IMG/VR virus record: IMGVR_UViG_3300017917_002466
Coordinates: 124,001 to 188,000 of that record
Strand: one strand, 5' to 3'
Length of the DNA: 64,000 bases
The notes below the pieces were generated by a model. The model ran no database searches. It saw nothing but the letters and a program-made list of their open reading frames with translations, and had not been told where the DNA came from. Both the position numbers and the translations under genes were made by a program. Position 1 is the stretch's first letter, and each line of letters starts with the position of its first letter. Below, one piece after another: positions 12,164 to 63,656 of the stretch.

Positions 12164-12264
12164 TATAAATACTGTTGTAGTAGGGAGACAGAGGAGTCGA
12201 CACCTTTTCTCAACCATACTTGAGATTATCCCTACTTAATCTACTTAACCTGTATGGAGGGAAT
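12164..12264 (+). ncRNA. TATAAATA promoter plus structured pseudoknot leader RNA, copy 1
   Basis: P1 agtaggga/tccctact; P3 tctcaa-ccatac-ttgaga; loop pairs with gtatgg overlapping the SD. Confidence 0.75.
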
Positions 12265-12957
12265 ATGCAAAAACTTTCTAAAGAAGATTTCATTTCCAAG
12301 GCTAATCAAATCCACCAAAATCGTTTTGATTATTCAAAAGTTGAATACTACGATAATAAAACTAAGGTTTGTATTATTTGCAAAGAACATAAAGAGTTCT
12401 ATCAACAACCAAGCAAACATCTTCTTGGTCAAGGTTGTCCAATATGTTCAGACCAAAAATTAACATTAGATAAGTTTATTTCAAAAGCAAATCAAACTCA
12501 TAACTTCTATTACGATTATTCTGAAGTTGTTTATGTTAACTGGAAAACTAAAATTTGTGTGGTATGTCCAGCACACGGAAAGTTCTGGCAAAGACCAGAT
12601 GTTCATTCGTCTGGTCAAGGATGTCCTATATGTAAATCTTCAAAAGGCGAAAAAGAAGTTGAAAAATGTTTAACCAACAAAGGAATTACATTCATTCCAC
12701 AAAAACGATTTGAAGATTGTCGTGGTAAAGTCAAACCTTTACCTTTTGACTTTTACTTACCAGAACATAATATTTGTATTGAATACCAAGGTAAACAACA
12801 CTACCTAAAAGAAAGTAAGTTCTATTCGGAAGAACTTTTACAGAATGATAAAACAAAAGCCCAGTATTGTTTCGATAACAACATTAGGCTTATCGTGATC
12901 CCATATTGGGAAGACGTTTATAAATGTCTACGATTTTTTGGTAGCGAAAGAGGTTGA
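12265..12957 (+). CDS. free-standing endonuclease (two zinc-ribbon repeats plus DUF559/Vsr-like PD-(D/E)xK domain)
   Basis: FISKANQIH...YDYS...C..H...GCPIC repeats; PFDFYLP...IEYQGKQH; GGAGG RBS. Confidence 0.8.
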   Translation: MQKLSKEDFISKANQIHQNRFDYSKVEYYDNKTKVCIICKEHKEFYQQPSKHLLGQGCPICSDQKLTLDKFISKANQTHNFYYDYSEVVYVNWKTKICVVCPAHGKFWQRPDVHSSGQGCPICKSSKGEKEVEKCLTNKGITFIPQKRFEDCRGKVKPLPFDFYLPEHNICIEYQGKQHYLKESKFYSEELLQNDKTKAQYCFDNNIRLIVIPYWEDVYKCLRFFGSERG

Positions 12958-13092
12958 CTTTAAAAAAACATTAAATCCTTTCTGTAAAGAAATGAAAGGG
13001 CTCTGGTCGCTTGGCGTCCGTGGCCCCTTCCCCCAATTTACCAACCCATTGACTTGATACATACAATATATATCAAAAAAAGTTGTTTTGTC

Positions 13093-13190
13093 AAATGGAA
13101 TTTGTTTATGTAAAGATTGTCATAAAAAATTTCACAGTATGTTTGGTATAAAACATACTGTAAAATCTATGATAGACGATTTTTTAAAAA
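13093..13190 (+). pseudogene. HNH endonuclease C-terminal remnant
   Basis: Translates NGICLCKDCHKKFHSMFG, similar to the end of 24660..25343. Confidence 0.7.
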
Positions 13191-13457
13191 CTACCAACCC
13201 ATCGACTTAACCATCTCACGACATTTGATTTGAGCAGGAGTATATTCGAGGTCTTTCTTCCATTCACCAGTCGTCTTGTCTCTATAGGCGATAATATCGC
13301 TGGTATACACACTTCCGCACTCCGTCTCAAAGCCATAGACCCGACAGATGGTCGTGGAACCACGGGCTGAACCAAGAACGTCGGCTTCCCAGCCGTTGCG
13401 CTGCATCACCCGAAAGCCCTTCTTGTTCTTCGCATCCCACAGTTCGGCAGTCTTCAT
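13191..13457 (-). CDS. hypothetical protein
   Basis: ORF MKTAELWD with own promoter. Confidence 0.6.
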   Translation of the reverse strand: MKTAELWDAKNKKGFRVMQRNGWEADVLGSARGSTTICRVYGFETECGSVYTSDIIAYRDKTTGEWKKDLEYTPAQIKCREMVKSMGW

Positions 13458-13540
13458 TCCCCATCCCTTCGTTAAATGTTTGTTTCTCTCACCTACACAT
13501 TTAATATACAACAGAAAAGGGATTTTGTCAAGCCCTATAT

Positions 13541-13909
13541 TCACCACGAAGACTGGTAGATACAAGGCTTGTTTGCGGCGATGGCATTGTCCAGAATCTT
13601 CAAGGTGGACTCCAAGTCCTGAATGTAGTATTCGTCATAGTCCGTTCCACCGAAGAAAAATCCGCCCTGAGTAGGAAGCATTTTTTCCGCCAGAGAGAAG
13701 TCGCTCTTCTTGGCAGCGGCCAAGACCTTGTTGACGGTTGAACGAAGGGACTTCAGCTTGGTGACAGAGACGAGGGACCCCTGGCATTCGTCAATACCCT
13801 TCTGGCAGTTCTGTACGAACCATTTGTGAATTGCGTTGGCCTTGCGCCAATATCCGACATTAACGTTCTGGCCATTCACATTGCGGAACAAATACATATC
13901 CAGACCCAT
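13541..13909 (-). CDS. conserved phage hypothetical protein
   Basis: MGLDMYL, YWRKANAIH.WF, LPTQ.GFFFG and YQSSW family motifs. Confidence 0.75.
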   Translation of the reverse strand: MGLDMYLFRNVNGQNVNVGYWRKANAIHKWFVQNCQKGIDECQGSLVSVTKLKSLRSTVNKVLAAAKKSDFSLAEKMLPTQGGFFFGGTDYDEYYIQDLESTLKILDNAIAANKPCIYQSSW

Positions 13910-14234
13910 ACGCCTCCCTTATGTTGATTGTTTCTTTTCCCTACATATCTAATATACATCAAGGAAATTGTTTTGTCAAGCCTTAATTACGAAAAGAATC
14001 AACTCGCATTAGTTGATCTTTTCAAGAGAAAATGTTTCGCCTTCATAAACATATTTCAACTGAACATCTTCTGCTTCTGCTCTTGTCAAGATTTTGGGGT
14101 TTGCACCCTTTGCACCCTTTGCAACATAAATCGGCATCCCTTGAACAGTTCCCTCAAAGACCCAAACTTTCCCCTCTGCATCTGTTACCTTTGCAATGTA
14201 TAATTCTTTCATATTTGTTTTTCCCCATCCTCTC

Positions 14235-14645
14235 TTAATTTGTTTTTCCATAGTTGTCAAGGAATTTTTGAATTGCAGGAAGAAGAACATTATGAAAAGA
14301 ATCAACGATTATTTTAGCCGATTCATAATCTGGTGCTAAGTCTTCATTAGTCACGACGAATCCTGCATCCATATTGGACTGACCTTGATTAAAAATATTT
14401 ATAAAGACTTCCTTTGCCATTTGAAGAACAATATCGTCATCTTCATTAATGTTTGAATTAACAAGATTGGTTTTGAAAAACATATCTGCTTCCCAATCTT
14501 CTTTGGCGGCATTATATTCTTTTTGAACAAAAGTGTCAAAAGAAATTTTTTCATTGAGGGTTTTTTCAATATCATAATGCATTGAATGAAGTTCTTTCAA
14601 ACCAATATCATCAATCCATTCGATAAGACTGGGGAACTGAATCAT
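14235..14645 (-). CDS. hypothetical acidic protein
   Basis: 136 aa; GGAGG RBS; own promoter. Confidence 0.6.
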   Translation of the reverse strand: MIQFPSLIEWIDDIGLKELHSMHYDIEKTLNEKISFDTFVQKEYNAAKEDWEADMFFKTNLVNSNINEDDDIVLQMAKEVFINIFNQGQSNMDAGFVVTNEDLAPDYESAKIIVDSFHNVLLPAIQKFLDNYGKTN

Positions 14646-14715
14646 ATTTCCTCCCTCGTTAATGTTGTTCTTTCAACACATATAATATACAACAAGAACT
14701 GAAAAAAGTCAATCC

Positions 14716-17622: not shown

Positions 17623-17632
17623 TTGATTTCTC

Positions 17633-24484: not shown

Positions 24485-24558
24485 GCTTCAGCCAATCTAT
24501 TTTGGAGTTTATACATATAATTATATCATTTGATATTTGATTTGTCAAGAAGTAATAT

Positions 24559-24659
24559 CATAAATATTTGTAGAAGTTAGGAGACAGCCTCCGGCCGGTG
24601 GTTTCTTTACCGCAATAAAGATTATCTTAACTTCCTTACTTAACCTTTGCGGAGGAGCC
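24559..24659 (+). ncRNA. late-type promoter plus structured pseudoknot leader RNA, copy 2
   Basis: gaagttagga/tcttaacttc; tcttta-ccgcaa-taaaga; ttgcgg(agg). Confidence 0.8.
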
Positions 24660-25343
24660 ATGATTCTTTCTAAAACTGTTCAAGTTAAAATTAGCCGAAG
24701 AAATATTAAACATTATTTGTCTCTTGGTTATGTTATTCCAAAACATACTGATATTTATAATCGCCTTTGTAATCAAATAGGGATTCTAATTGAAGTATCT
24801 ATTGGACATTTACTCAAAGGAAGTAAAGTAAAAGTTCTTTGTAAATGTGACGAATGTGGAAAAGAAAATTTAACTTATTACAACGAATCTCTTAAATTCA
24901 AATATATTTGTAAAAATTGTGCTGCTAACCAACCTAAAAGATTAGAAAAGTTAAAAAATGCTATGACTGGTAAAAAACATTCCGAAGAAACTAAAAAGAA
25001 AATGAGTGAACATAATTGGGCAAAGAATCATACTGGAAAACTACATCCTTGTTACAATTCTAATCTTACTTTTGAAGACCGATATCTAGGTAGAAATAGA
25101 AATGTACAGCCAGAAAATTATCAATGGAAAAAGAAAGTTAAAGAAAGAGATAATCATATTTGCCAAAAATGTGGCTCAAAAGAAAATCTATGCGTTCATC
25201 ATCTTAACAACTATAAATCATTTGAAAACGAAAGGTATGACATTAAAAATGGAATTACCTTATGTGTTGGATGTCATAAGGAATTCCATAAAAGATATGG
25301 TCGTTTAACTACCAAAGAGCAAATAAAGGATTTTATAGGGTAA
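24660..25343 (+). CDS. HNH homing endonuclease with NUMOD3-like motif
   Basis: KHSEETKKKMSE; RDNHICQKCG...VHH...NGITLCVGCHKEFH. Confidence 0.85.
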   Translation: MILSKTVQVKISRRNIKHYLSLGYVIPKHTDIYNRLCNQIGILIEVSIGHLLKGSKVKVLCKCDECGKENLTYYNESLKFKYICKNCAANQPKRLEKLKNAMTGKKHSEETKKKMSEHNWAKNHTGKLHPCYNSNLTFEDRYLGRNRNVQPENYQWKKKVKERDNHICQKCGSKENLCVHHLNNYKSFENERYDIKNGITLCVGCHKEFHKRYGRLTTKEQIKDFIG

Positions 25344-25632: not shown

Positions 25633-26481
25633 CTAACGGGCATTTCGCACAACAGTGTCCTGCGCGGGGCTTCTTAGCGCATGGATGCGCTCTTCTGCTA
25701 TCCGGCAGTATTTCTCTTCCTTCTCAATTCCGATGTAATTCCGGCCAGTATTAATACAAGCGATTGCAGTAGTACCGGAACCAATGAACGGGTCTAAAAT
25801 TGTATCACCACAAAAAGAATAATAAGAAATCGCTTTTGTAGCCAACTCTAATGGGAACGGAGCTGGATGTCTATTACGCTCCGGGTTGATTTTCCATACA
25901 TTTGTTCTTTCGTAACCATCCAGCACTTTGGATTTTTTTATTATCTCTTGTGAATGAGAACGAATTGATTTGTCCAGTAAGCACCCCGGCTTTGAAAACA
26001 CCAGTATATATTCTGTAATATTAAATGTTTTGTACGCAACTGGTCTACGATGGTGCGAAAATTTGATTGCTCGACTTGATGCACCATCTGGCTTTACCCA
26101 TATAATGTCGTCTAAGAATGTCCATTTTTTTGAAAGCATAGAACAAACATCAAACGGTATTGGTATTCGTTTTGATTCTGTGCTTCTTTTTTTCCTCGCT
26201 TCAATAACGCATGACAAGTTCAGCACAAATATTCCCGCCGGTTTTATCTTTGTATGTGCCGTATTAAAAACTGTGTCTAAAAAAGATAGATACGAGGCAT
26301 ACGATTCGTATTTTGAATAACACCTTGCATTATAATACGGCGGTGATGTTAAAATCATATCCACGCTCTCGTCTGGTATAGTCTGCATGACTTCGAGGCA
26401 GTCCCCGCATGTTACGGTATTTGTCTTCGGCGCAGGACGCGCCGTGTCTTGCCCCGCGCCTATAATTTCAGAATTTGCCAT
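25633..26481 (-). CDS. DNA methyltransferase (N4-C/N6-A, beta-type motif order), last unit of array 2
   Basis: GDCLE, ILTSPPY, HPAPFP, ILDPFIGSGTT, GIE; ATG 5 nt after GTTAGGT. Confidence 0.9.
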   Translation of the reverse strand: MANSEIIGAGQDTARPAPKTNTVTCGDCLEVMQTIPDESVDMILTSPPYYNARCYSKYESYASYLSFLDTVFNTAHTKIKPAGIFVLNLSCVIEARKKRSTESKRIPIPFDVCSMLSKKWTFLDDIIWVKPDGASSRAIKFSHHRRPVAYKTFNITEYILVFSKPGCLLDKSIRSHSQEIIKKSKVLDGYERTNVWKINPERNRHPAPFPLELATKAISYYSFCGDTILDPFIGSGTTAIACINTGRNYIGIEKEEKYCRIAEERIHALRSPAQDTVVRNAR

Positions 26482-26516
26482 ATTGCACCTAACGGTTCGG
26501 CAAACGTAAGCCGTGC

Positions 26517-26738
26517 CTACGAATGCGTGCGACAAGGATATTTTACGTGAACGCACTGACGGTCGTAATTCTCCACACAGCACGTTGTTTGGCATGGCTT
26601 GCTTTGCCTGTTGTTTGTCTGTTGAGCGAGTACAGCGGATTTCAGAGTTTGCCAATGCAACCGCCCCTTAGTTTGCAAGTGCTCCGATAACTCATCAAAC
26701 CATTGAACCGCATCAGATATTTCGTTACTCATTGGCAA
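26517..26738 (-). CDS. cassette ORF with attC-encoded Cys-rich tail
   Basis: One ORF per cassette; AGGAG RBS. Confidence 0.55.
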   Translation of the reverse strand: MPMSNEISDAVQWFDELSEHLQTKGRLHWQTLKSAVLAQQTNNRQSKPCQTTCCVENYDRQCVHVKYPCRTHS

Positions 26739-34740: not shown

Positions 34741-34795
34741 AAAGTTCTCCTTTTCTATAATATAATGATTGCCAAATGTTTTGTCAAGGTCTTTC

Positions 34796-43935: not shown

Positions 43936-45240
43936 CTAAATTCTGTTATCTTCAAATCGGTCTAGAAAAGTTTTAAATCCCCACATCACAGGAGGATTAG
44001 AGTTTTTTGTACTCATAAGCCACAATACTTTACATTTTGGTTGGTGGGGAGGAGAAGCACAACCATCAGTATAAACTACCAATCCATCAACCTTTTCTTT
44101 ATCAGCTAAATTCATTATTTGCTCAAAGTCAGTTCCTCCCCTACCAAGACAAGTAAAACTCTTTCTGGCTTTTCTAAAGTTCTTTTCCACAATTTTTATT
44201 TCTGTATCAAACTCCACAAAAGTTATCTTACAATAGTGAAGTAGTTTATTCACAACACCAAAACCATATGCCAAATCTTCATCAGTCATTGAACCAGAAC
44301 TATCAACAGCAAAGATAACGTGTGGCATATAAACTCGTCTATAACCTGGGAGTTCAATATCCCAACGTCTATTCAAACGCATACGGCTACTAATACTTTT
44401 TCCTGTCAATACAGAAGCGCCAAATTTTCTAATAACATCTGAAGCTCTTACTTTTGGTTCAAGAGTCGCAAGAATTGATGCCTGTGCAGTACCAGTATAT
44501 CGTCCCCATTGTCTTGTCCTATGACGAACTTTATCAACGAAAGTCTTTATATCAGTATCAAATCCATTATTCTTTCCCCAACCCTGATTGCCATTACTAT
44601 TAGGGTCAGTATATTTCGTCATTGCTTCTTTTTCATTATCAAACTCTTGGAATCCATCACCATCAGCATTTTCATCTCGTTGGTCTTGTTCATCTTCAGT
44701 TTGAGAGATTACTTTTTGAACCATATCTTTCTTTTGTTCGTCAGACATTGACCCCCAAATCTTTTGAATTTGTTTATTGACCTTATCGGCTCTTTCTAAA
44801 AGTTCTCGGAAATATTCTTCAAAAGCTAAATTATCTTTCAAACCAAATCTTTTTGGGTCGGGAGTTATTTCATCAATTCCTTGGAGAAGTTTCTCAACAT
44901 CACCGTTTGAAAGTTGATTAATTGCTAAAGAAGAAGAAAGGTGAGCGATGTTTGCCGGTTCTTTCAGTCTGGTGGTGGGGTGACGAAGAAGCACACGCAT
45001 ACCTTCCGTATAAAGTACCAATTCAAGTTTTTCAAGAGAGATTGTAGTAATAAAGTTTGGGTTATACCTAAGAGATACTCGGTCTTGTCTAGTAACATCA
45101 ATACCCATTGTGTCATATTGTGGGTCTGGAATCTTATCCAACATTGACAAAGCACCAAATAAAACATTATCTTTTCTCCAAAGAGAAAAAATAACCTTAT
45201 CTATTTTTTGTTTGGCTCTTTCTATATTTTCATTATTCAT
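43936..45240 (-). CDS. DUF2201-type protein with C-terminal VWA domain
   Basis: DSSGSM MIDAS, GRGGTDF, YTDG. Confidence 0.85.
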   Translation of the reverse strand: MNNENIERAKQKIDKVIFSLWRKDNVLFGALSMLDKIPDPQYDTMGIDVTRQDRVSLRYNPNFITTISLEKLELVLYTEGMRVLLRHPTTRLKEPANIAHLSSSLAINQLSNGDVEKLLQGIDEITPDPKRFGLKDNLAFEEYFRELLERADKVNKQIQKIWGSMSDEQKKDMVQKVISQTEDEQDQRDENADGDGFQEFDNEKEAMTKYTDPNSNGNQGWGKNNGFDTDIKTFVDKVRHRTRQWGRYTGTAQASILATLEPKVRASDVIRKFGASVLTGKSISSRMRLNRRWDIELPGYRRVYMPHVIFAVDSSGSMTDEDLAYGFGVVNKLLHYCKITFVEFDTEIKIVEKNFRKARKSFTCLGRGGTDFEQIMNLADKEKVDGLVVYTDGCASPPHQPKCKVLWLMSTKNSNPPVMWGFKTFLDRFEDNRI

Positions 45241-46648: not shown

Positions 46649-47339
46649 TATGAACCCCTTTCAATTGGTGTTACTTATGAAGCTCTTCGTCTATTTCTTC
46701 TTCGTACTCTTCATCTTCTTCAAGACTATCAAGGTCTATCTTTCTAAGGTAATCTTTTACCTTCTGTCTACTTTTCTTTTGAGACTTGCCGACTTTCTCC
46801 ATTCCATAGTTGTCAGCGTCATAATAGTTTTCACGGAAAGTCTTACTCATTTGATTAGGCTCCTTTTCCCTTTCTTACTCTTTTGAAAAAGCAACGAGTA
46901 CATTGCGTTAAATTGTTTGCATCAGCAGGCTGAATGAAATATTGGTTGCAGAATTTACAACGACAAATCTTCCCAGTCCACATAATGCGGATACGTTCAA
47001 AAATGTTATAGTGCTTTGGTATTGTTCCAAACAAAGAAAACTTCTTGAGCCAGCATTGTATTGGATTCTTGATTGATAATTCGTATTCATTGATTTCTTG
47101 GAAGACATTGCATTCTTTGACTTGGTCAAAAAGCATACTGAAGTGTTCAAAACTGCCATCCCCTTTATGTAAGAAGTGGCAAAAACCATTCTCTTGATGT
47201 GGTTTGTCTTTTTGAATTGACCAATATGGGCAAGTTCCATCACTATCCCAACAATATATTCCCTGTGGAATATTCTCAATTTTTCTTTCTTTCATACTTT
47301 CAATATACATCTGTTTGCGAAAAAGTCAAGTAGTAAAAT

Positions 47340-47476
47340 CATAAATATTTATAGAAGTTAAGAGACAGCGACTGATCCTCGTTTCTTTGCCAGTACAAAG
47401 ATTATCTTAACTTCATCTACACAAACCGTACTGGAGGTTCTATGATAGTTTCTAAAACAATTCTAATAAAAGAGTT
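47340..47476 (+). pseudogene. leader RNA copy 5 plus minimal HNH remnant
   Basis: ccagta/tactgg pseudoknot; ATG 47442 MIVSKTILIKEF resembles MILSKTV...IKDF ends of 24660..25343. Confidence 0.7.
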
Positions 47477-48051
47477 TATGAATTTATAACACGAAAAGCA
47501 TCAACAACAAATCTAATTTGATATTTACAATCGCTTATTGCGTTATGTTTCTGATCTTTGTCATCTGAATATTTACTTGTTGATATTTTTGAAAGCCAAG
47601 TTATTGTTCTACAATCAAATATATGCTTATAACTCCAAGGAGTTATAAGATTATATTCATTATAAGCTTGATTTAAAAGAGGAATATCAAAACCATTGCC
47701 CCAAACCTTAAAATTCTCTACAAGATTATTAGAACAAAAATCATTAAGTAAATTCAAACATTCCAATAAACTAATATTCCTATATGCTTCACTTTGTTCT
47801 TTTCTTACATTTTCGGGTTGGTTAAACCAAAATTTAATAGAACCCCATTCAATGTTTCTATTTGTTTGAGTTTCAATAATTGGATAAATTTCAAACTCTT
47901 TCCCCAATGTTCCATCTGTAATATTAAAACAAACTGCTCCAATACTTAAAACTACTGCATTCGTTTGAACTCCAAGAGTTTCAAGGTCTATCATAAGATG
48001 ATGTAGCTTCTTACTTTCTGCGGCCGGTACTGCGTTTATTTCTTCTGACAT
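47476..48051 (-). CDS. DEDD 3'-5' exonuclease (exonuclease VIII/Rv2179c-like)
   Basis: MIDLETLG, WGNG.D, DCRT, HNAISDC. Confidence 0.85.
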   Translation of the reverse strand: MSEEINAVPAAESKKLHHLMIDLETLGVQTNAVVLSIGAVCFNITDGTLGKEFEIYPIIETQTNRNIEWGSIKFWFNQPENVRKEQSEAYRNISLLECLNLLNDFCSNNLVENFKVWGNGFDIPLLNQAYNEYNLITPWSYKHIFDCRTITWLSKISTSKYSDDKDQKHNAISDCKYQIRFVVDAFRVINS

Positions 48052-50301: not shown

Positions 50302-51126
50302 TTACTCCTTGTCTACATCAACCCATTTCTGAATATAGTTTCTGTCTTGTGTGAAGATAGGAATTTCAGTATCAATAACATATTCTGTTCTTATTGTAGG
50401 ATTTCCAAGTATCTGTAGTCTATCTTCTTTTGATTTAGGAAATCCATCTTTATCATCCAAGTTATATGTGAGTCCATCTTTAATACAAACACTTCTTTTA
50501 TAGACGCAAGTTCCCCTTTTCTTGTGAGTTTCTGTATCATTCCAGTTGATACCTTTCTGTGAGAAAAGCATTTCCTGAATTGCTTCACAAGACTTATGGT
50601 CAAGTTCCTTGTGAGAGAAGTGGGCTCTTCCAACCATCTGAATAGAGTTGCGAGTACAGTCCTGCTGTCTCCAAATTATCACATTAACAACATCATCTTT
50701 CGGAACGTTAAATGCTCTGGCATCAAACAAAGCTGGCTTTTTATCATATCTTTCAGGAAATTTAGCCATAAACTCGTGATTAAAGAAAGCAGTTGCCATT
50801 GAAGCCGCAACAGACTCAACTTTACTTTTACGATAGTCAAACCAAGCACAGGTTTCAATTCTTGTATAATCAGTTAAAAGTAGCGTAATTTCATCGCTTT
50901 GAGTATAACCGAACGAACAACCTTCAATATTCTTTACAAGAGCTTGAGTTGTTCTTTGCATACATTCAATAAGATTATCGTCAAAAGGTCTATTCATTCC
51001 TCTTGTTAAAGTATGAAAAGCGCACCCATCCAAACGAATAATAACTGGTACGCGTCTAGTCAAATATATTTCGGTTGCCTTTTCATATTCTTTACATCTA
51101 TCGCCTAATGATCTTTTGTCTGACAT
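50302..51126 (-). CDS. tRNA(His) guanylyltransferase Thg1-like protein
   Basis: IRLDG.AFH, YTQSDEI, FDARAF, WRQQD..RNS, GINWND. Confidence 0.9.
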   Translation of the reverse strand: MSDKRSLGDRCKEYEKATEIYLTRRVPVIIRLDGCAFHTLTRGMNRPFDDNLIECMQRTTQALVKNIEGCSFGYTQSDEITLLLTDYTRIETCAWFDYRKSKVESVAASMATAFFNHEFMAKFPERYDKKPALFDARAFNVPKDDVVNVIIWRQQDCTRNSIQMVGRAHFSHKELDHKSCEAIQEMLFSQKGINWNDTETHKKRGTCVYKRSVCIKDGLTYNLDDKDGFPKSKEDRLQILGNPTIRTEYVIDTEIPIFTQDRNYIQKWVDVDKE

Positions 51127-51181
51127 AGATACTCCTTGGTAATATAATATGGTCGCGGCTAGTTTGTCAACTAGCCACAAC

Positions 51182-52108
51182 CTATTTGGTGAGAAGAGCT
51201 TCCAGTTTGTCAAGACGCTCCCAAACATCTTTAACAGAAATGTACTCTGTAGTCTGTTTTTTCATTCCACTCTCACTACCATACCATTGTTCAATAGCAT
51301 TAGCGAGAAGAACTTTAAGTTCTCCTGTTCTTGGTTGTGGGGAAATTGTGGTTTGATTAAGAGATTTCTTTTCAAGAATATCCAATCTTTCAAGAGCATA
51401 CTTCTCAAACCTTTCCCAAGTTCCCCAAGTACCTTCTCTCATACTTTTGGCTTCTTCTTTATTATTCATCAAATCAATAGTTCCGTTATCCAAAACCTGA
51501 TTGATTTGGTCAATGAGCCTCAATATTTGAGAAGCTTGTTTAACATCCATTCCAAACTGTTCAAGCATAAATTGTCTCTTAGGGTTTTCGGTTTTACCTC
51601 TTTTAATATCATTTCTCATACGATGAAGCTGTGCAAAAGCATAACCCTTAAAAGCCATTACTGTTCTAAGAGATAAAAACTTCTCAGCATTATCTCTTAG
51701 CATCCAAGCAATATCTGTACCAAAGGTAACCAAGTGTCTTCTAACAAAAAGACATTCAATAAGATTTGGTGAACCTTTAATTCCAGTAAGATAAAAAAAT
51801 CTAACTAAACTATTCCACTCTCCTTCAACATCAGTCTTACCATCAGGAGTAAGAATTCTACTTTTTTCTCCTTTGACTTCTTTACTTTCAAAATTGGGAA
51901 CATTATCAAAACCAATTACATATCCGTACTTTTGAGGAAAAAGATGGACTTCTTGTGGCATAACTAATGCGACAATATCAATATCTGATTGCGGAGTATT
52001 AAGTCCATAAGCTTGGCTTCCGACAATACACTCATAAAGTAAATTTTCTCTAATCCAAAGTTCTTGTTTTTGAAATTTTTCTTGAACAAATAAATCCGTG
52101 TAAATCAT
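51182..52108 (-). CDS. DNA polymerase beta superfamily nucleotidyltransferase
   Basis: GSQAYGLNTPQSDID, PNLIE, FKGYA..Q. Confidence 0.85.
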   Translation of the reverse strand: MIYTDLFVQEKFQKQELWIRENLLYECIVGSQAYGLNTPQSDIDIVALVMPQEVHLFPQKYGYVIGFDNVPNFESKEVKGEKSRILTPDGKTDVEGEWNSLVRFFYLTGIKGSPNLIECLFVRRHLVTFGTDIAWMLRDNAEKFLSLRTVMAFKGYAFAQLHRMRNDIKRGKTENPKRQFMLEQFGMDVKQASQILRLIDQINQVLDNGTIDLMNNKEEAKSMREGTWGTWERFEKYALERLDILEKKSLNQTTISPQPRTGELKVLLANAIEQWYGSESGMKKQTTEYISVKDVWERLDKLEALLTK

Positions 52109-52982: not shown

Positions 52983-53816
52983 TTATTGACACTTTTCGTT
53001 TTCGTCCAGAATGAGATTGATAGCTTTTCCAATTCTGCTGACAAGAGGAATCACAGCATCAACAGTTTCCTTCTTCAAGTTGTCAGCATACTTGTCAATG
53101 TATTCGTATGTGTTCTTTGTACCAGCCTTCAAACCAAACATCCTCATAAGTACGGCTGCTCCGAACTCTGCGACAATCTCTTGGTTAGAATCTTGACCAG
53201 CCTTGATTGCTCCCTGCACCTTCTCGTCTGCGGCATGGACAAGTTCGTGAAAAAATGCCTGCTGGTCGTCCGTTGCCATCACAATTTCTTTGCGTTCAGG
53301 TGAGAAGTATGCATAGAAAGAAGGGTTATCAAATCCCTGCCTGACCTTCATCCCCCAATTTTTTGCGACCTTCTCACAGAGGAACTGTGGCATTTCCTTG
53401 TCAACCTTGTAGTCTACATCTTTCCCTTCAGTCTTTTCCACTCCCCAAACTGCGATAGGGTTGAAGCCCACCAAAATCGGAATCTTCTTTTCCTTTCCAT
53501 CCTTATCCAGTACAGGCTTCCCGTCGTTGTCAAGGACTGGCTTCAGCCAAAGCTTCGGGGCGATGATACAGAAGTTCCCCGCCTTCGTAACCTTGCGTCC
53601 AACCTTGAACCAAGCCCTCGGGCCTCTTGCGTCAAAAGTACCGTGACGCATCATAATCAGTCGGTTCAGGATTGACCAGTTGTCAGAAGGAATGTCTATA
53701 CCTCTGCGGAACATAGACTTCGCCACAGTCTCCAAAGACTCTGGCTCCTTGAACATCTTCAACAGCCCTTCAATTTCCCCTCGCACCTTGTCGTTGGACA
53801 ACATACTTCTGGCCAT
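52983..53816 (-). CDS. ArdC-like antirestriction protein (ssDNA-binding plus zincin domain)
   Basis: WS..N.L, W...GRKV.K, FFHELVH, EIVAE.GA. Confidence 0.7.
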   Translation of the reverse strand: MARSMLSNDKVRGEIEGLLKMFKEPESLETVAKSMFRRGIDIPSDNWSILNRLIMMRHGTFDARGPRAWFKVGRKVTKAGNFCIIAPKLWLKPVLDNDGKPVLDKDGKEKKIPILVGFNPIAVWGVEKTEGKDVDYKVDKEMPQFLCEKVAKNWGMKVRQGFDNPSFYAYFSPERKEIVMATDDQQAFFHELVHAADEKVQGAIKAGQDSNQEIVAEFGAAVLMRMFGLKAGTKNTYEYIDKYADNLKKETVDAVIPLVSRIGKAINLILDENEKCQ

Positions 53817-56322: not shown

Positions 56323-57489
56323 TTATATCTTATCTAAGCAACTTTTGAGATAATTAAAATAATCTTGATCTTCTGTCATAGACTTGGAAATATTATTGCT
56401 AAGTTTACAAACAGGTAGTCCATTAACAGAAATCTGCTTACAAACATTTTGTAGTGGCTCAAGTCCAAGATCATTAGATAAATAAGTTCCAATCCCGAAC
56501 ATAGTTTTTATTCTATGATTAAAACGAATAGCTAACTCAAACATCTTTGGAAAATCAAGTCCGTCAGAAAAAATCAATACCTTATTTTTTGGGTTAATTC
56601 CCAAAGCATTATAGTGATTTAGTACCATCTCACCCCAGACTATAGGATCACCAGAGTCGTGCCTCAAACCAGAACTTCTATTAGCAATATCTGGTGATAG
56701 ATCAAGTAACATTTTTTTATCACCTAACGTATCAGACAAAAGAATTCCTAAATCATTTCCATAAAAATCTAACCAAGTTTCAATCGCCATTTTCTGACTG
56801 TTCATAGGATGAGTAAAGGCTTGGAACAAAGTAAAAAACTCGTGTGCCATTGTGCCTATAGGTTTGATATTGAAACGCCTTGCCAAATCCACATCACTAG
56901 TTCCAATAATAACTCCATTATCAGCAAGATTTTTTGTTATGAACTCGTGCCATTCTGTAGTGTACGCTCTCCTACCCCCAAATTCTGCAATCAAAGGAGT
57001 ATAGCCATTCTTGCGTTCAAATTCTTTGAACATCGCAATTTTCTGAACAAGCCTATTTCTACCTTCAGAAATAAGATTATCATTAATAGGATTTACATTC
57101 CTACTATAAACCTCATGTACAATTTTCAAAACAAATATTTCAAATAGACTTACGTTTGTTAATGGTCCTTCCATTTCAATAGCCAAATTCCCATCTTTCT
57201 CACCAACATTAATATAATGCCTTTTGAGTCTGAAATCATCAAGATAGTTTATAAAACATTCACTAAAATAAGGAATAACAGCAAGATATTCAAGTTCATC
57301 ATTAGTAAAATTCAAATCACATAAACAGTCGATCTCATCTTCAATCTCTTTTTTAAATGGTAAGAGATTGATTCCGACATTTCTACACTTGAATTTATAC
57401 TTTGCTAATACATTAGGAAACTTCTGAAAAAAGATATTCAACATCGTCAGTTTGTAATAGTCTTGACTCAATAAACTTTTGATTATCAT
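56323..57489 (-). CDS. pncB: nicotinate phosphoribosyltransferase
   Basis: DYYKLTM, EFG.RR, GTMAHE, RHDSGDP, IFSDGL, FGIGT. Confidence 0.92.
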   Translation of the reverse strand: MIIKSLLSQDYYKLTMLNIFFQKFPNVLAKYKFKCRNVGINLLPFKKEIEDEIDCLCDLNFTNDELEYLAVIPYFSECFINYLDDFRLKRHYINVGEKDGNLAIEMEGPLTNVSLFEIFVLKIVHEVYSRNVNPINDNLISEGRNRLVQKIAMFKEFERKNGYTPLIAEFGGRRAYTTEWHEFITKNLADNGVIIGTSDVDLARRFNIKPIGTMAHEFFTLFQAFTHPMNSQKMAIETWLDFYGNDLGILLSDTLGDKKMLLDLSPDIANRSSGLRHDSGDPIVWGEMVLNHYNALGINPKNKVLIFSDGLDFPKMFELAIRFNHRIKTMFGIGTYLSNDLGLEPLQNVCKQISVNGLPVCKLSNNISKSMTEDQDYFNYLKSCLDKI

Positions 57490-58185
57490 TCAATTCCTCT
57501 TTCTTACTTCAATACACTTTCAATACGATTCTTTATTGCGGTCTTTAATTGAAGTTCCTTTTTATACATCTAATATAAATCAAGGTAAAGGATTTGTCAA
57601 GTTATTTCTTTCTTGCTTCTCTAAATTGTTTCAATTGTTCAAGCTTACCATTTAAAAACTTAGCTGGTAAAAAGAAAATATCTCCACACACTTGAAGAAA
57701 TTCCACAATAGGTTCAAGTGTTTCAATTGCAACAACAAGTTCTTTATCAGCAATTGCTTCACCAACACGAAGTCTATTCAAAACATCCGAAGTTGTTTGA
57801 TGTTCGGATTTCATCTATCCTCCCTTCCAAAAGTCTCCATCCAATATGTTAAAATTTTAATAGATTCTTTATTATTAACTTTAAACTTCTTTTCAATATA
57901 TGGAGCAGCTCCAAACATGTTAGTTTTACCTGACTCTCTTAATTCATCAAGAAAGTCAAGATGATCTTGAGTTACATAATCTGGTCTTGACATTTAATCA
58001 TTCTCCATTGGTAGTGATTCTACAATTAATTTTCTTCCCCACTTAATATCCAGTTCTTCAATAGTAAAAGCTCTTCCTTTATCAATTTCATTTAGTTGAT
58101 GTACAATTTTGATTTCATCATTATCAGCATAATGAATTTTAGCAGGAAAATTAATCATGACTTAGACTCCTTCGTTTAGAATAAT

Positions 58186-58554
58186 TTAAATTACCCTCAT
58201 ATAAAGAGTTTTGAAATACTTACCGTATTCAATACTATCGTCTATCATTAAATCAATATTTTGTTGCTTACAATATTTGGCTTTAGCATAGTTCCAATCT
58301 TCATTTTTGAAAAATGGATCATTAGGAGTCTTCCAATAAACTTCTTTACCTTGCGAAAGAAGATCGTCTGCTATGCTATAAAAATGAGTGTATTGAATTC
58401 CAAATTCTTTTAATTGAGATTCTATTTCAGGAGTTCTTTGCGAACCAGTTATAATGTAAACATTATGACCTTGTTCAATCAACCTTTTAGTAAAGGTTGT
58501 AAAAAACTTTGGCTTTGCATCAATTGTGTTATGTATGTCTACTCCGAACCGCAT
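58186..58554 (-). CDS. HAD-superfamily hydrolase-like protein
   Basis: FGVDIHNTI, IITG, IDLMIDD. Confidence 0.65.
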   Translation of the reverse strand: MRFGVDIHNTIDAKPKFFTTFTKRLIEQGHNVYIITGSQRTPEIESQLKEFGIQYTHFYSIADDLLSQGKEVYWKTPNDPFFKNEDWNYAKAKYCKQQNIDLMIDDSIEYGKYFKTLYMRVI

Positions 58555-59818
58555 AACAACTTTAAGCCTTTCTAAACCAATCCCACAAATAGTTCTTTCC
58601 CTTAAACTCTGGCTGGAGACTAAAGCTGTCTATTGTATTGTACTCTCCGTACACATCAACCCAATCCCCTCGGAACCCTTTGATTTTGTAGGTCTTGTTT
58701 TTGAAGAAAGCACATCCGACTGGGTCAGAAATTTCTGGAACATCTCGTTCTGCAAGGAGAAAATCATTTGGAACAATTACCTCAAAGCATTCCATAAACG
58801 TATCCTTTCTATGTAACTAATATAATATCTGTGAAAGGATTTGTCAATGGTTATTTGAAATATTCATAACCATTTGTGCCAAAGCTCCAATATCATCTGA
58901 AATAAAATCAAGGGCTTTAGAAAGTTCTCTTCTTGTTACCATTTTATCTGGACTTCTTTTCATCTTTTCTACAAAGCTATCCCAATCTTTTTGTCTAAGT
59001 TCAGAATCTTTATTTTCCGTTTTCATAGTAAACTTCATTCCACTTCTGATTCTTCTTTCTTGATATTGAACTTTTTGCCTTTCACGCTATTGCCGTGAAC
59101 GCATTCGTGTTCAATGTTGTTGGGCTTTGAACCTTGACACCAACGATAGTTCTTAGTGTAGGGAGCATAAACTGGACATTCACAACACTTCATAGAAACC
59201 TCCTATTCTGAAATTATATCAAACTGGTCACCGATTTTATTCAAAGTATTGGCAAGTTGTTTGGCCAAAGACTTTAGCCATTCCTCAGACCTACCATTCA
59301 TTACCCTGTCTTGTTCTTCTTCTGATAAGTCTTCAAAGACAACATTAGCATACTTCTTGGTATCTTCGTTCAAAGTCCTGAAATAAATGCCCGAAAGTTT
59401 TCTACGTTCTTTAGCCATTTTCTAATCTCCTTTATCTGTTTCATTAAGGATTCTATTAGCCCTACGTTTAACATTACCCGGCTTCTTATACATCATTTTC
59501 AAATAATCTTCAGCAGAAATTGAAGCACTCGAGACAGTAGGACGATAAGTACCAGAAACTGTTCTACCATCCATCGTAGTTGCTGTCAAAGGATTAAAGC
59601 CATTGTCATACATTCTATTATAATGATCTACTTCTTTCCTTATATCTTCAATGTAGTCTGTATTCTTCTTAGCCTTCTCAATCACTACTTTCATTGTAGG
59701 AGTTACTGTTTTCGGTGGCCTTGGCTTAGGCTTCGGAAGCATTGCCTTGATTGTTTTCAATTCTTCAAGAAGATTCTTGAAAGTTGAATCAAGGAAATCA
59801 ACATACTTCAAGTAAAGC

Positions 59819-60427
59819 TTAATCATATAATTCACCTTCAATTTTAAAAAAATTTCTACCAATAAAAGAATTAAAAATTAACCAAGCTTTTGCACTTATT
59901 TTATTATTTGGATTTTCTAAAATTTCTTGAACTTTATTTTTGTCGGCTATAATAATTTCTATTTCTTCACTTGATTCATTATTTTTATTTGAGATTTCTC
60001 CTTCAGCTTCACAAAAAACAATTGAAATTGATTCATCTGAAAGACCCGCGCTGTTTATAATAAATGGACTTATATGTTTTATTTTTGTCACATTTAGTCC
60101 AACTTCTTCAAAAAATTCCCTACGAGCAGCTTCTTCAATACTTTCATTTTTGTCAATTAATCCTGCTGGCAGAGAAAATTCATAATCCTGAAGTGGAACT
60201 CGGAACTCTTTGATAACTACAAGCCTCAAATCTCTTTGATATCCTGCACCAACTGGCATTGTAATCCATCCCTTATCAACAACAGCCGCAATATAAACTG
60301 CCTTCATTCCGTTTGGTCTAGAACACCAAGTCCAATAATTTGTTTGATTTTTTTTATTAAGATATTCAGTTGCAAGTAAATCAAGAAATTGTGTTTTAAT
60401 TAGTGGTTTAGTTCTCAATATTTTCAT
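59819..60427 (-). CDS. NUDIX hydrolase (ADP-ribose pyrophosphatase-like)
   Basis: PAGLIDKNESIEEAARREFFEEVG Nudix box; EFRVP; SAGLSDE. Confidence 0.9.
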   Translation of the reverse strand: MKILRTKPLIKTQFLDLLATEYLNKKNQTNYWTWCSRPNGMKAVYIAAVVDKGWITMPVGAGYQRDLRLVVIKEFRVPLQDYEFSLPAGLIDKNESIEEAARREFFEEVGLNVTKIKHISPFIINSAGLSDESISIVFCEAEGEISNKNNESSEEIEIIIADKNKVQEILENPNNKISAKAWLIFNSFIGRNFFKIEGELYD

Positions 60428-61004
60428 AAAGCTTTTCCTTTTTAATAAAACGTACAATTTTTTTATTTGTCAATGCAGTAGCACAATTAAAATTACCCCG
60501 ACTCAAAAGCTTTCTTATATAAGTAGAACTACATTCACAATTTTTTATAAGCAACATTTGATGTGGCTTAATTAAATACCAAGTTTCAAGATGTTGTTCG
60601 ATATAATCGCCTCTTTCAAAAATAATAAATGGAACTGATTGTATTAATGATTCATAATTAGCCCAAGTATTAATATGGTCTGCACAGTCCCTTCCTATAA
60701 TAACACTAAAATTATATTTTTCAAACATAAAACGAAGAATAGCTATCATATCATACATACGACCACTTATATTCATTTCTTCATATCGCTTAACCTTAAT
60801 ACGACCAAATAAACTAGGAAATATTAATTTACACATTTTAATTCTATGTTCAAAAGATACTTGATTATTTTTATGTGGATGGTTATAAGTAGGAAGTACC
60901 CAAACTTCATTAACAAGATTCTTTTCCAAACAAGCTTTTACAATTGCTAGATGTGAAATGTGGGGTGGATTAAAAGAACCCCCTAGTATTCCGATCTTTT
61001 TCAT
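60408..61004 (-). CDS. nadD: nicotinate-nucleotide adenylyltransferase
   Basis: GGSFNPPH..H, IIG.D, SSTYIR. Confidence 0.9.
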   Translation of the reverse strand: MKKIGILGGSFNPPHISHLAIVKACLEKNLVNEVWVLPTYNHPHKNNQVSFEHRIKMCKLIFPSLFGRIKVKRYEEMNISGRMYDMIAILRFMFEKYNFSVIIGRDCADHINTWANYESLIQSVPFIIFERGDYIEQHLETWYLIKPHQMLLIKNCECSSTYIRKLLSRGNFNCATALTNKKIVRFIKKEKLYENIEN

Positions 61005-61012
61005 ATTATTCT

Positions 61013-61321
61013 TTACGGAAGAATGATACCACTCTTAGTCTTATTACCAACTGTTCCTGGTTTTCCACCCGTAATTACTGATACAATCTGCTGAAAGTTA
61101 TGGTTCAGAGCATCCATATTATGCATCATCGTTACTGACATTTGAGCCAAACCTTCAATGTTTCCAGAAACGAACTCAACAACTTCCAAGAGTTCGGACT
61201 TGGTAACAGTTGCATCAGGATTATCTTTCAAATCCTGAACAAAAGCATCCCACTTAGCTTTGCGGGCTTCGTATTCTTTCTTCATTTCCTCTTTGGTCAT
61301 TTCCTTCTGTGGCTGTTCCAT
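61013..61321 (-). CDS. hypothetical protein, paralog of 58844..59038
   Basis: WD.FV......PD..VT..EL....F.S..I..LAQM shared. Confidence 0.65.
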   Translation of the reverse strand: MEQPQKEMTKEEMKKEYEARKAKWDAFVQDLKDNPDATVTKSELLEVVEFVSGNIEGLAQMSVTMMHNMDALNHNFQQIVSVITGGKPGTVGNKTKSGIILP

Positions 61322-61344
61322 TTTAGCTTCTTGGTATGATGATT

Positions 61345-62127
61345 TTATGTCTTATTAAGTTTACAGATTGGTGGCATATTCATTTTATGAAAACTATTAT
61401 TATGTCTCTTAACATAAATTGTTAAAATTTCTTTTTGTCTATCTGTTAATTCTATAAACATTCTTTCATAAACTTTTACTGGCAAATATGAATACTTTTC
61501 ATAATATTCCATTGCCCATTCAAGTTCAGGATAAGTTGCACCTATCTGATCTTCATCCGAACGATCATCTTCCCATAATCCGTCTGTAGGTTTTGCTTCA
61601 ACAATCTCTTTATTAATATCAAAATGTTTAGACAAATCCCATACTTCAGTCTTCAATAAATCACCAATTGGACTAATATCAACTCCACCATCTCCATACT
61701 TTGTAAAAAAACCTACACCAAAATCTTCAACTTTATTTCCAGTACCAGCTACAACATACCCATAACTATTAGCAAAGTTATACAAAGTCACCATTCTTAA
61801 ACGCGATCTGGCATTTACTAAAGCTAAATCTGAAATTGCATCAAATGGAATACTTTTTTTCCATACTTCAAAAGTTTCCGTCAAATCAACCTCAAAAGAA
61901 GTAACATTCGTAAAATTCCTTTTCAACCAATTCATATGGTTATGGGCTCTATCTAAATGAGATTTTGGTTGATGAATTGGCATTGAAACAACAATAACGG
62001 GTTTTTTAGTTTTAGCACAAAGAGTACTAACTAATGCAGAGTCAACCCCACCACTAATACCAATAACAAAACCATTGTAACTCTGTAGCCAATTAACAAT
62101 TTGTTTTTCAACTTTAATGCAGTCCAT
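61345..62127 (-). CDS. nadE: NH3-dependent NAD+ synthetase
   Basis: GISGGVDS, N.RSRLRM, GTGNK.E, GFFTKYGDG, PTDGLW. Confidence 0.93.
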   Translation of the reverse strand: MDCIKVEKQIVNWLQSYNGFVIGISGGVDSALVSTLCAKTKKPVIVVSMPIHQPKSHLDRAHNHMNWLKRNFTNVTSFEVDLTETFEVWKKSIPFDAISDLALVNARSRLRMVTLYNFANSYGYVVAGTGNKVEDFGVGFFTKYGDGGVDISPIGDLLKTEVWDLSKHFDINKEIVEAKPTDGLWEDDRSDEDQIGATYPELEWAMEYYEKYSYLPVKVYERMFIELTDRQKEILTIYVKRHNNSFHKMNMPPICKLNKT

Positions 62128-62144
62128 AACACTTTATTTTCGTA

Positions 62145-62675
62145 TTAAAGTTTTGCTACTGCAAAGTGCGCTCCAGCAGCGCGCATTTCTTTGATTGCTA
62201 CTTCGGTAGTTTCTGGAGCAACCCCAGCAATTGCATTCTCAAAGACGTAAGTCTTAATCCCAAGTTTACAAAGACCAAGAACAGCCGCCTTCACACAGTA
62301 GTCAGTGGCAACTCCAGCGATCCAAGCATCAGTAATCTTATTCTTTTTCAACCAATCTACAATCTCCTTGCTTCCAAGTTCTGGATGAAAAACATCATAA
62401 GTCTTTTTATTAAAAACCACTGCTTTATTAGCGGCACATTCTATTATACTAGCTTGTCCGCTGGTTTCTGTTATACAATGAGGTGGAAAAATCTTAAACT
62501 CTGGATCGTTGACATCGTGACAGTCCATTGTCTTGATAAGAAGAATATTGTCTTCTTTAACCATTTCTGTAATTTTGGCAAGAACTGGCCTAATTTTATC
62601 GGTATTCGGAACAGCCAGTGTTCCACCAAAAAAGAAATCATTTTGACAATCAACTAGAACAATTACCTTTTTCAT
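62145..62675 (-). CDS. pncA: nicotinamidase
   Basis: VDCQNDF..GGTLAV, PPHC, GVATDYCV. Confidence 0.9.
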   Translation of the reverse strand: MKKVIVLVDCQNDFFFGGTLAVPNTDKIRPVLAKITEMVKEDNILLIKTMDCHDVNDPEFKIFPPHCITETSGQASIIECAANKAVVFNKKTYDVFHPELGSKEIVDWLKKNKITDAWIAGVATDYCVKAAVLGLCKLGIKTYVFENAIAGVAPETTEVAIKEMRAAGAHFAVAKL

Positions 62676-62741
62676 ACTATATACTCCTTTGTTGAGTTCA
62701 CAATAATATAATATCTTGTAACAAGTTTGTCAAGGACAATC

Positions 62742-62897
62742 TATAAATACCTTTAGAAGTTGGGAGACAAGGGCCGTACACCTTTTTCTTGCCAATCCAA
62801 GAATTACCTCAACTTCCTTACTTATACCTGATTGGAGAGCTATTGTCATAAAGATATTCATAAAAGATTTAGTAAATTTACAACAGAAGAATACTTA
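62742..62897 (+). pseudogene. leader RNA copy 6 fused to HNH C-terminal remnant
   Basis: ccaatc/gattgg pseudoknot; CHKDIHKRFSKFTTEE. Confidence 0.7.
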
Positions 62898-63172
62898 ATT
62901 CTGTTTATCTAGTTTATTAGATTCGTCAAAATATTGTTTGATTATTTTCAAAACTTGAACCCAGAACACCTTTATTGAAAGTTCTTTGGATTCTCTCATA
63001 TTGTTATCCACGTATCTTATCCCTTTTTCAAAATCCAGAGTATCGTGCAAAAAACCTATAAGAATATAATCAAGTTTATTATTCATCTTATTTGGAACCA
63101 TAGACTGAAGTTCAGCTAATTCCTTTATCATCTTGATAACTAAATCTTTCTTAGTCTGATTTTTTCTTACGT

Positions 63173-63275
63173 TCATAGAATGTAGACCTTGACTGTTGTT
63201 TCACCAAAACATTCGTTAATCATCTTCTCAACGATTGACCACTCACCATTGGTCAACCCACAACCAATCTTTATA
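63173..63275 (-). pseudogene. macrodomain C-terminal remnant
   Basis: KIGCGLTNGEWSIVEKMINECF...VKVY matches the macrodomain (P)xIGCGLxGGxW motif. Confidence 0.6.
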
Positions 63276-63552
63276 CTTAATCATTAAAACAACACTCCCT
63301 CGTCCATAAGACGAATCTTTTTTTCTTTTTCACATTTTTCAATACATTCATCACATAGGGCTACTTGATAGACATTTCCATCAAAAAGACTTCCGTATGG
63401 CATTTGAAGAAGAAAAGTCACCCCACCGTTTACATTGTTGAATGATTTGTTAAGGATACTCTCAAGCTTCTTTCCGCAAATCATACAGACTGGCTTCTTA
63501 AATTTCTTCTTGTTGTTCATTTCTTCCTCCGTTAAATATTTATCATTAAAAA

Positions 63553-63656
63553 TATAAATACAAGTAGAAGTTAAAAGACAGCGTAGGCATACGTTTCTTT
63601 GCTCACTCAAAGATTATTTTAACTTCACTAACATAAACCTAGTGAGAGGTATATCT
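63553..63656 (+). ncRNA. TATAAATA promoter plus structured pseudoknot leader RNA, copy 7
   Basis: gaagttaaaa/ttttaacttc; tctttg-ctcact-caaaga; agtgag(agg). Confidence 0.8.

Follow-up and report, generated by a model that had tools for sequence, protein, structure and literature searches.

A covarying three-way-junction leader RNA with a predicted kissing loop over the Shine-Dalgarno sequence of phage homing-endonuclease genes

Seven copies of a structured leader RNA, each about 90 nucleotides (nt) long and all on the + strand, precede homing-endonuclease genes or their remains in a 64,000-nt stretch of IMG/VR virus record IMGVR_UViG_3300017917_002466 (positions 124,001 to 188,000; this whole stretch is hereafter called the window, and its copies are numbered c1 to c7 in Table 1). 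As judged from covariation, the leader is a genuine sense-strand RNA structure, a three-way junction with a tertiary pairing between one of its loops and the Shine-Dalgarno (SD) sequence, and the contact is predicted to be an intramolecular kissing loop with a mini-hairpin that holds the SD itself. Homing endonucleases are abundant selfish genes of large phages and, to our knowledge, little is known outside T4 of how phages hold many of them in check. We think it probable that the leader is a portable module of uncultured large phages, reaching from promoter to start codon, which throttles the translation of homing endonucleases; the structure and the occlusion of the SD follow from covariation, and we infer the transcription start, the repression and any gating. 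One exchangeable module of promoter, fold and SD, recombined onto at least five unrelated nuclease families within a single phage lineage, would amount to a common control of selfish genes rather than a separate solution for each gene.

Fold and covariation of the leader

The leader runs, in order, through (T/C)ATAAATA, about 6 nt, helix P1, AGACA, helix P2, helix P3 with a 6-nt loop (L3), ATTA, the 3′ arm of P1, and a linker. A first-pass annotation made from the letters alone had described this layout, placed it at seven sites, and quoted six different L3 loops together with downstream complements over the SD; layout, sites and all six pairs proved correct. Run without filters over both strands of the window, a covariance model returned exactly the seven leaders with scores of 63.6 to 92.7 bits, the next best hit scoring 12.7, and elsewhere it found further copies in other phage and metagenome contigs. 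A script that required AGACA, a perfect P3 stem and ATTA likewise stopped at only the same seven sites on both strands, with an exact reverse complement of L3 lying 22 to 24 nt after ATTA in 6 of the 7; for the seventh, copy c4 at 35836, it found no reverse complement of L3 downstream of ATTA.

Pairing was assessed in two alignments, a MAFFT alignment of 19 leaders and a model-guided alignment of 26 distinct rows. In the first, P1, P2, P3 and the loop-to-SD pairing are 94% paired, compared with 33 to 50% when the partners are slid, and 0 of 500 shuffles matched the observed pairing or covariation. In the second, which was fitted to nested helices and favors them, the loop-loop pairs lying outside the model, i) 95.5% of the cells pair, compared with 40 to 53% for slid partners; ii) compensatory double changes occur in 26 of 31 pairs; iii) none of five measures was equaled in 500 shuffles; and iv) 98.6% of the cells of the loop-loop helix pair, and 5 of its 6 positions show double changes. 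RNAalifold, unguided, returns P1, P2, P3 and a fourth helix, P4, formed by the conserved CCU that ends the linker and by the AGG of the SD, and the 6-nt loop so enclosed (L4) is precisely the partner of L3. P4 is 93% paired and itself covaries, CCU/AGG giving way to CUC/GAG upon a shift in SD register; P3, which closes L3, is 100% paired. Covariation and these unguided helices together support the three-way junction that had been proposed, and folding of single sequences recovers it in 5 of 6 window copies. The pseudoknot over the SD that the first-pass annotation had drawn keeps its covariation and its pairing with the SD, but the L3 partner is not a single strand: two hairpin loops, each on a stem of its own, are Watson-Crick complementary and covary at the sequence level, as in a kissing complex. 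Similarly, the AACCT at which the linker had been said to end is there in sequence, but it is no mere spacer, as its CCU pairs with the SD.

G.U pairs occupy 45 cells of the helices and A.C mismatches only 7, and the fold therefore belongs to RNA of the sense strand. A G.U pair within the kissing helix is rare, although the single example, at locus L044, was enough to reject the notion that this helix strictly excludes them. Also rejected was the notion that loops within one genome are kept orthogonal to prevent cross-kissing, because c3 (CTTACC) and a copy at locus L006 (L006b, CTTACT) belong to the same phage and differ by 1 nt.

The helices differ markedly in how they vary. P1 has 7 to 11 bp; P2 is a variable hairpin closed by an invariant A-U and an invariant G.U; and P3, nearly invariant in sequence, may have 5, 6 or 7 bp, but always carries a 6-nt loop. 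Among the unpaired bases only six are invariant, all at the three-way junction: GAC, which separates P1 from P2, and UUA, which separates P3 from P1. In the copy at locus L272, G replaces the A of AGACA and C replaces the U that follows AUUA, a joint change in favor of that closing pair. The junction bases and P3 persist although divergence has reached saturation in P2, the linker and the loops, and the leader has in this respect what a riboswitch-type element has, a covarying aptamer-like fold with invariant unpaired nucleotides. Leaders c3 (34807-34845) and c5 (47351-47389) share a run of 39 identical nt that opens with P1 and closes with the 5′ arm of P3, yet 5 of their 6 loop positions differ, as do linker, L4 and gene, a pattern that indicates recombination or gene conversion inside the conserved core.

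The leader matches no Rfam family. With Rfam 15, no hit in the whole window reached a gathering threshold and, at E<=5, none fell on a leader in sense orientation; single leaders searched with lax filters returned only antisense noise at 7.7 and 16.8 bits. A small multi-stem junction with few invariant bases and a 6-bp tertiary helix, borne by phages, does invite comparison with self-cleaving ribozymes, one of which might process the 5′ end of the nuclease mRNA. In the pistol ribozyme, a hairpin loop forms a covarying pseudoknot of about 6 bp with a downstream segment, and pistols occur in phage-like contexts; their topology and core differ from those of the leader, however, and the leader's partner strand is the loop of an SD hairpin. 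The Rfam models of small self-cleaving ribozymes (hammerhead, twister, twister-sister, pistol, hatchet and hepatitis delta virus-like) gave no match, even with lax filters on single leaders; the sequences at the junction are unlike the cores of hammerhead, twister, pistol and hatchet; and no conserved candidate cleavage dinucleotide lies outside the helices. We accordingly regard self-cleavage as very unlikely. Nor did we find a published description of the leader in the literature searched. The main text of a 2023 automated catalogue of about 10,000 candidate structured RNAs from IMG/VR (PMC10690425) does not mention it, an unannotated entry in the supplement being possible.

Shine-Dalgarno occlusion and its possible control

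The SD is shared between two covarying helices. The first two Gs of GGAGG are the last two bases of L4 and lie inside the kissing helix, and the remaining AGG is the 3′ arm of P4, a helix of 3 to 4 bp. Taken alone, P4 has a mean folding energy of +0.2 kcal/mol (typically -1.5 to +0.8), compared with -3.7 to -7.8 kcal/mol for the loop-loop duplex by a bimolecular estimate. Since P4 is worth about 0 kcal/mol by itself, occlusion would depend on the kiss, and with two SD Gs in the kiss and AGG in P4, the whole SD would be paired only upon docking. The spacer between P1 and P4, 8 to 14 nt long, is strongly depleted in G (2 of 237 nt, where the window strand has 16.6%; P = 2.7e-16), which indicates selection for an unstructured segment.

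At the 5′ end, ATAAATA is invariant; it lies outside every helix, 0 to 8 nt (mostly 6) before the first pair of P1, and the longer P1 is, the farther the motif stands from the junction. By the spacing rule of T4 late promoters, transcription would start on the base adjoining P1, and both the invariance of the motif and its spacing from P1 are consistent with a promoter. The window has 15 occurrences of the full octamer TATAAATA, where 5.6 would be expected, and 5 of the 15 belong to leaders; non-leader sites stand at 7312, 11874, 14396 and 43860 on the minus strand and at 36931, 42083, 43725 and 45270 on the plus strand, few of which (11874 and 43860, for example) are plausibly upstream of genes. 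No gp55-like factor was identified among the window proteins scanned.

Taken together, these features suggest the following course of events. RNA would start at or beside the base of P1; the three-way junction would display L3; L3 would kiss L4, and the marginal P4 would close; P3, the kissing helix and P4 could stack upon docking, leaving every SD base paired; and binding of the 30S subunit would be throttled, so that potentially harmful nucleases would be made at a low level or only after undocking. Translation would then reflect low constitutive leakage, perhaps by way of the G-free spacer acting as a standby site, or else something would undock or lock the kiss. Throttling of this sort would match established practice among T4-like phages, which restrain homing endonucleases by sequestering the ribosome-binding site (RBS).

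Inhibitory RBS hairpins of this kind precede I-TevI, I-TevII, I-TevIII, segB and Aeh1 mobE (PMC3014915, PMC2988022), and in T4 a late promoter lies inside the inhibitory hairpin, letting late transcripts escape repression (PMC2988022). The leader resembles them in that a cis RNA structure pairs the SD of a homing endonuclease beside a TATAAATA-type promoter, presumably in restraint of a selfish nuclease. It differs in two ways: the T4 hairpins are simple and specific to their genes, whereas the leader is one conserved three-way-junction and kissing-loop module shared by at least five nuclease families; and the leader's ATAAATA is 5′ of the entire fold, so that every transcript from it would carry the fold. 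The analogy with T4 drawn in the first-pass annotation is thus borne out for SD sequestration, but not for the placement of the promoter within the structure. RBS-sequestering control of homing endonucleases was known, and what appears to be new is a conserved and portable three-way junction with a kissing-loop module. As a compact, covarying lock on an SD hairpin with free choice of loop sequence, the module may serve as a test case for the evolution of RNA tertiary contacts, and perhaps as a programmable translational lock.

Several observations weigh against a simple translational throttle. Repression is deduced from the structure; the promoter is 5′ of the whole fold, and a T4-type escape by late transcripts cannot apply; in a few members the pairing potential of P1 reaches within 0 to 2 nt of ATAAATA, which is hard to square with a start about 6 nt past that motif; repression alone would call for no more than a simple SD hairpin, and the invariant junction and P3 suggest some further function; and the highest-scoring leaders in the window are those before the dead genes of c3 and c5, which could point to a role independent of the open reading frame (ORF).

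Alternatively, the leader might serve mainly mRNA stability and ribosome loading rather than repression, with a net effect on expression that is neutral or positive; P1 at the 5′ end would protect the mRNA against decay that depends on the 5′ end, and the spacer would be a standby site for ribosomes. In most members P1 starts some 6 nt past ATAAATA, which would leave the 5′ end paired; the spacer is strongly depleted in G; and loci L294 and L308 have a simpler arrangement of 5′ hairpin, spacer and SD mini-hairpin. Such a stability element would, however, leave unexplained both the full pairing of the SD in two covarying helices and the invariant junction, and we consider it unlikely.

Another possibility, though a tentative one, is that an effector gates the throttle: a small molecule or a protein, of the phage or of its host, bound at the junction and P3 would stabilize or break the kiss and so tie nuclease translation to the stage or state of infection, which would refine the throttle rather than replace it. 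Six invariant unpaired junction bases and an invariant P3 amid saturated divergence speak for a binding site, and P4 is marginal alone, as expected of a regulated docking element. Extra copies of a member's own L3 or L4 nearby do not exceed the control rate, and a two-state switch by strand exchange with a covarying competitor strand was rejected for lack of such a surplus; any switching would therefore be by docking, which the missing competitor fits. The distribution of the leader, which follows phage lineage (see below), would suit a lineage-specific factor acting in trans. On the other hand, we have no candidate ligand or protein, scans of the window proteins having produced one generic helix-turn-helix protein; the family is phylogenetically narrow, and some of the conservation may reflect recent ancestry; and the downstream genes form a coherent class, uniformly homing endonucleases, which suggests no obvious metabolite logic. 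An effector is plausible; it could be a metabolite, though a protein specific to the lineage is the likelier candidate.

Multi-helix domains that reach an RBS element by a tertiary helix, with docking setting access to the RBS, are familiar from riboswitches: in cobalamin riboswitches an L5-L13 kissing loop locks an RBS hairpin, and in preQ1-III a hairpin loop pairs with an SD-containing tail. The likeness has limits; no sequence or model similarity links them to the leader, the kiss of the leader is hypervariable rather than conserved, and the genes behind it are selfish nucleases rather than metabolic. That the leader founds a new class of effector-sensing switch, in which a pocket made of GAC/UUA and P3 controls the docking of a freely evolvable kiss and one signal governs many nucleases, is in our judgment doubtful; should there be an effector, the leader would define a new class of riboswitch or riboregulator, and its regulon would be an unusual one.

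Downstream nuclease genes and phage lineage

Each of the 24 complete leaders is followed by a homing-endonuclease gene or the stub of one, and at least five architectures are represented. Within the window only c1, c2 and c7 head intact ORFs, and the other four copies are decayed; the first-pass description of a leader before endonuclease genes is accurate for those three, while c3 and c5 now precede stubs and c4 and c6 precede HNH remnants. The c1 protein has two treble-clef zinc-finger repeats (DUF4379) followed by a C-terminal Vsr-like PD-(D/E)XK domain. The best PDB fold matches of its AlphaFold model (mean predicted local distance difference test score, pLDDT, 82) are to Escherichia coli Vsr (1vsr, 1cw0; E 5.5e-3), followed by other PD-(D/E)XK nucleases, and the DUF559-like label given to it earlier is supported at the level of predicted fold, with modest E-values; PDB sequence searches with the two intact nucleases found nothing. 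The two unrelated nuclease families that had been proposed behind the leader can thus be told apart, one being HNH by Pfam and the other Vsr/DUF559-like by predicted fold. In other contigs the same leader stands before SegE-like GIY-YIG proteins with NUMOD3, a LEM-3-like GIY-YIG protein, and a DUF7487-type homing endonuclease, and in another leader-headed zinc-finger protein the C-terminal sequence reads, by eye, like an HNH motif.

The loop allele CCAGTA/TACTGG precedes HNH, zinc-finger and GIY-YIG genes alike, and the spacing from SD to AUG is also shared among leaders, which argues that the leader, including its SD, is a shared module up to the start codon. From these sequence comparisons we conclude that the leader is a promoter-to-start-codon module that recombines onto different ORFs. 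A 434-amino-acid (aa) HNH endonuclease on the minus strand (43936-45240; phrog_1314, 9e-36) has no leader, and the module is therefore not used by every nuclease gene of this phage.

Three of the decayed cassettes (35836-36099, 62742-62912, and L005:1695-1792) represent independent internal deletions that join the leader to the region of the C-terminal HNH motif, the N-terminal DNA-binding part being gone; in c4 the remnant is joined straight to the leader, with no SD and no start codon. Whether decayed copies retain the leader for a role independent of the ORF was considered, and no evidence for this emerged, as six deletions would all miss the core with P ~0.65 by a rough estimate that takes the core as ~55 nt of a ~790-nt target.

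Another idea, in which the nucleases would use the leader as an RNA cofactor or guide, or in which it would act at the level of DNA, as a cruciform or a site of recombination or homing, draws on the strict link to nuclease genes and on the hypervariable 6-mers. Those 6-mers pair in cis, however, leaving no free guide; at least five unrelated nuclease architectures share the leader, which makes unlikely the earlier suggestion that it is an RNA partner of the nucleases; and the excess of G.U over A.C rules out a structure in DNA or in the antisense strand. We give this idea almost no credence. HEARO, the omega RNA of IscB, is also a structured RNA beside an HNH-nuclease gene, but it is a large guide RNA that one protein family binds, whereas the leader has about 90 nt, lies 5′ of the ORF, and precedes unrelated folds; HEARO was not matched in the Rfam search of the leader.

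GTCAAG, which stands upstream of four copies, was considered as part of the leader promoter; this was rejected, because the hexamer serves as the -35 box of a sigma70-type promoter that diverges from the leader on the minus strand (Table 1). These promoters (TTGACA-17-TATAAT/TATATT) place their -35 box 9 to 11 nt from ATAAATA (10 at c2) and drive minus-strand gene blocks, and the same back-to-back geometry recurs at loci L010, L023, L031, L079, L086 and L308. In T4, embedded promoters are thought to favor the keeping of endonuclease cassettes (PMC2988022). A rule that cassettes are always antisense to their neighbors, true of 7 of 7 in the window, was discarded as it fails at L002, L004, L005 and L268.

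Viral, metagenome and genome collections were scanned with the pattern, and a structural filter and covariance-model searches were then applied; this yielded about 17 further distinct copies in about 15 other phage or metagenome contigs, including 3 in the source contig outside the window. The hits of the metagenome scan provide a control of their own. Among hits without P1 pairing, loops range from 4 to 9 nt and the complement is found for 1 of 21 six-nt loops, whereas hits with P1 of at least 5 bp have a 6-nt loop in 18 of 20 cases and an exact complement in 15 of those 18, a contrast which argues for more than chance. In bacterial and archaeal genomes, none of 120 pattern hits passed the P1, loop and partner filter; 67 of these loci (L139-L205) were negative with the covariance model too, and L206-L258 by the filter alone.

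Relatives of the c1 nuclease (32 to 49% identical) in other phages have the leader at 0 of 79 loci. We therefore reject the proposition that the leader goes with the nuclease family, and conclude from its distribution that it tracks phage lineage instead. Distant relatives of the zinc-finger nucleases in other phages (L294:1330-1512 and L308:1330-1512) have no three-way junction; their layout is (T/G)ATAAATA, about 5 nt, a 5′-terminal hairpin, a spacer and an SD-holding mini-hairpin, and no loop-loop complementarity was seen in them by eye. The source contig (3300017917_002466, 253,664 bp; G+C of the window 37.7%) had no match among GenBank phages, either by megablast of 15 kb or by blastn of one leader. 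A Thg1-like protein of the window is ~43% identical to proteins of Bacillus Herelleviridae phages, its nearest, and the source is an uncultured large phage whose host, to judge from this, would plausibly belong to the Bacillota.

Table 1. Positions of leaders, their elements, the genes behind them, and divergent promoters (window coordinates)
Feature	Position	Strand	Details
Leader c1	12164-12264	+	75.0 bits
c1 TATAAATA	12164-12171	+
c1 junction GAC	12187-12189	+
c1 P3	12208-12213/12220-12225	+
c1 L3	12214-12219	+	CCATAC
c1 junction UUA	12226-12228	+
c1 P4 5′ arm	12249-12251	+	CCT
c1 L4	12252-12257	+	GTATGG
c1 P4 3′ arm/SD	12258-12260	+	AGG
c1 gene	12265-12957	+	intact homing endonuclease, 230 aa; phrog_559, 3e-56
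Divergent promoter at c2	24520-24548	-	sigma70-type, TTGACA-17-TATAAT with TG, 12/12
Leader c2	24559-24659	+	78.6 bits
c2 CATAAATA	24559-24566	+
c2 junction GAC	24583-24585	+
c2 L3	24610-24615	+	CCGCAA
c2 junction UUA	24622-24624	+
c2 P4 5′ arm	24644-24646	+	CCT
c2 L4	24647-24652	+	TTGCGG
c2 P4 3′ arm/SD	24653-24655	+	AGG
c2 gene	24660-25343	+	intact NUMOD3 + HNH homing endonuclease, 227 aa
Divergent promoter at c3	34759-34787	-	equivalent to that at c2
Leader c3	34796-34898	+	92.7 bits, top model score in window; P4 CTC/GAG
c3 L3	34846-34851	+	CTTACC
c3 L4	34884-34889	+	GGTAAG
c3 gene	34899-35030	+	decayed 43-codon stub, zinc-finger-type endonuclease
Leader c4 (incomplete)	35836-35911	+	63.6 bits; promoter and three-way junction intact; linker, P4, L4 and SD deleted
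c4 L3	35887-35892	+	CCAATC
c4 gene	35917-36099	+	HNH C-terminal remnant, 60 codons; Pfam HNH 4e-06
Divergent promoter at c5	~47285-47330	-	equivalent to that at c2
Leader c5	47340-47441	+	87.2 bits; P4 CCG/AGG
c5 L3	47390-47395	+	CCAGTA
c5 L4	47429-47434	+	TACTGG
c5 gene	47442-47489	+	15-codon HNH-type stub; N-terminus like c2 protein
Divergent promoter at c6	~62690-62734	-	equivalent to that at c2
Leader c6	62742-62838	+	79.7 bits; P4 and SD decaying (AGA), no ATG
c6 L3	62792-62797	+	CCAATC
c6 L4	62830-62835	+	GATTGG
c6 gene	to ~62912	+	~26 codons of HNH tail, fused to leader c6
Leader c7	63553-63656	+	80.7 bits; P4 CCT/AGG
c7 L3	63602-63607	+	CTCACT
c7 L4	63641-63646	+	AGTGAG
c7 gene	63657-64000	+	zinc-finger-type endonuclease start; runs off window; 249 aa in L006

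Other genes of the window

A Thg1-like tRNA-His guanylyltransferase (phrog_4717, 3e-91) and a nucleotidyltransferase are encoded by adjoining genes that together lie on the minus strand at 50302-52108; no tRNA genes were found in the 64-kb window. A cluster related to nicotinamide adenine dinucleotide (NAD) occupies 56323-62127 on the minus strand and comprises genes for a NAMPT-like protein (56323-57489), a NUDIX hydrolase (59819-60457), a cytidylyl/adenylyltransferase-like protein (60408-61004) and an NAD synthetase (61345-62127); to judge from these annotations it looks like a phage pathway for NAD+ salvage or reconstitution. Two DNA methyltransferase genes lie on the minus strand at 25633-26655 and 38199-38858 (phrog_67 at 5e-64 and, more weakly, phrog_2675), and a gene for an anti-restriction-like protein lies at 52983-53816.

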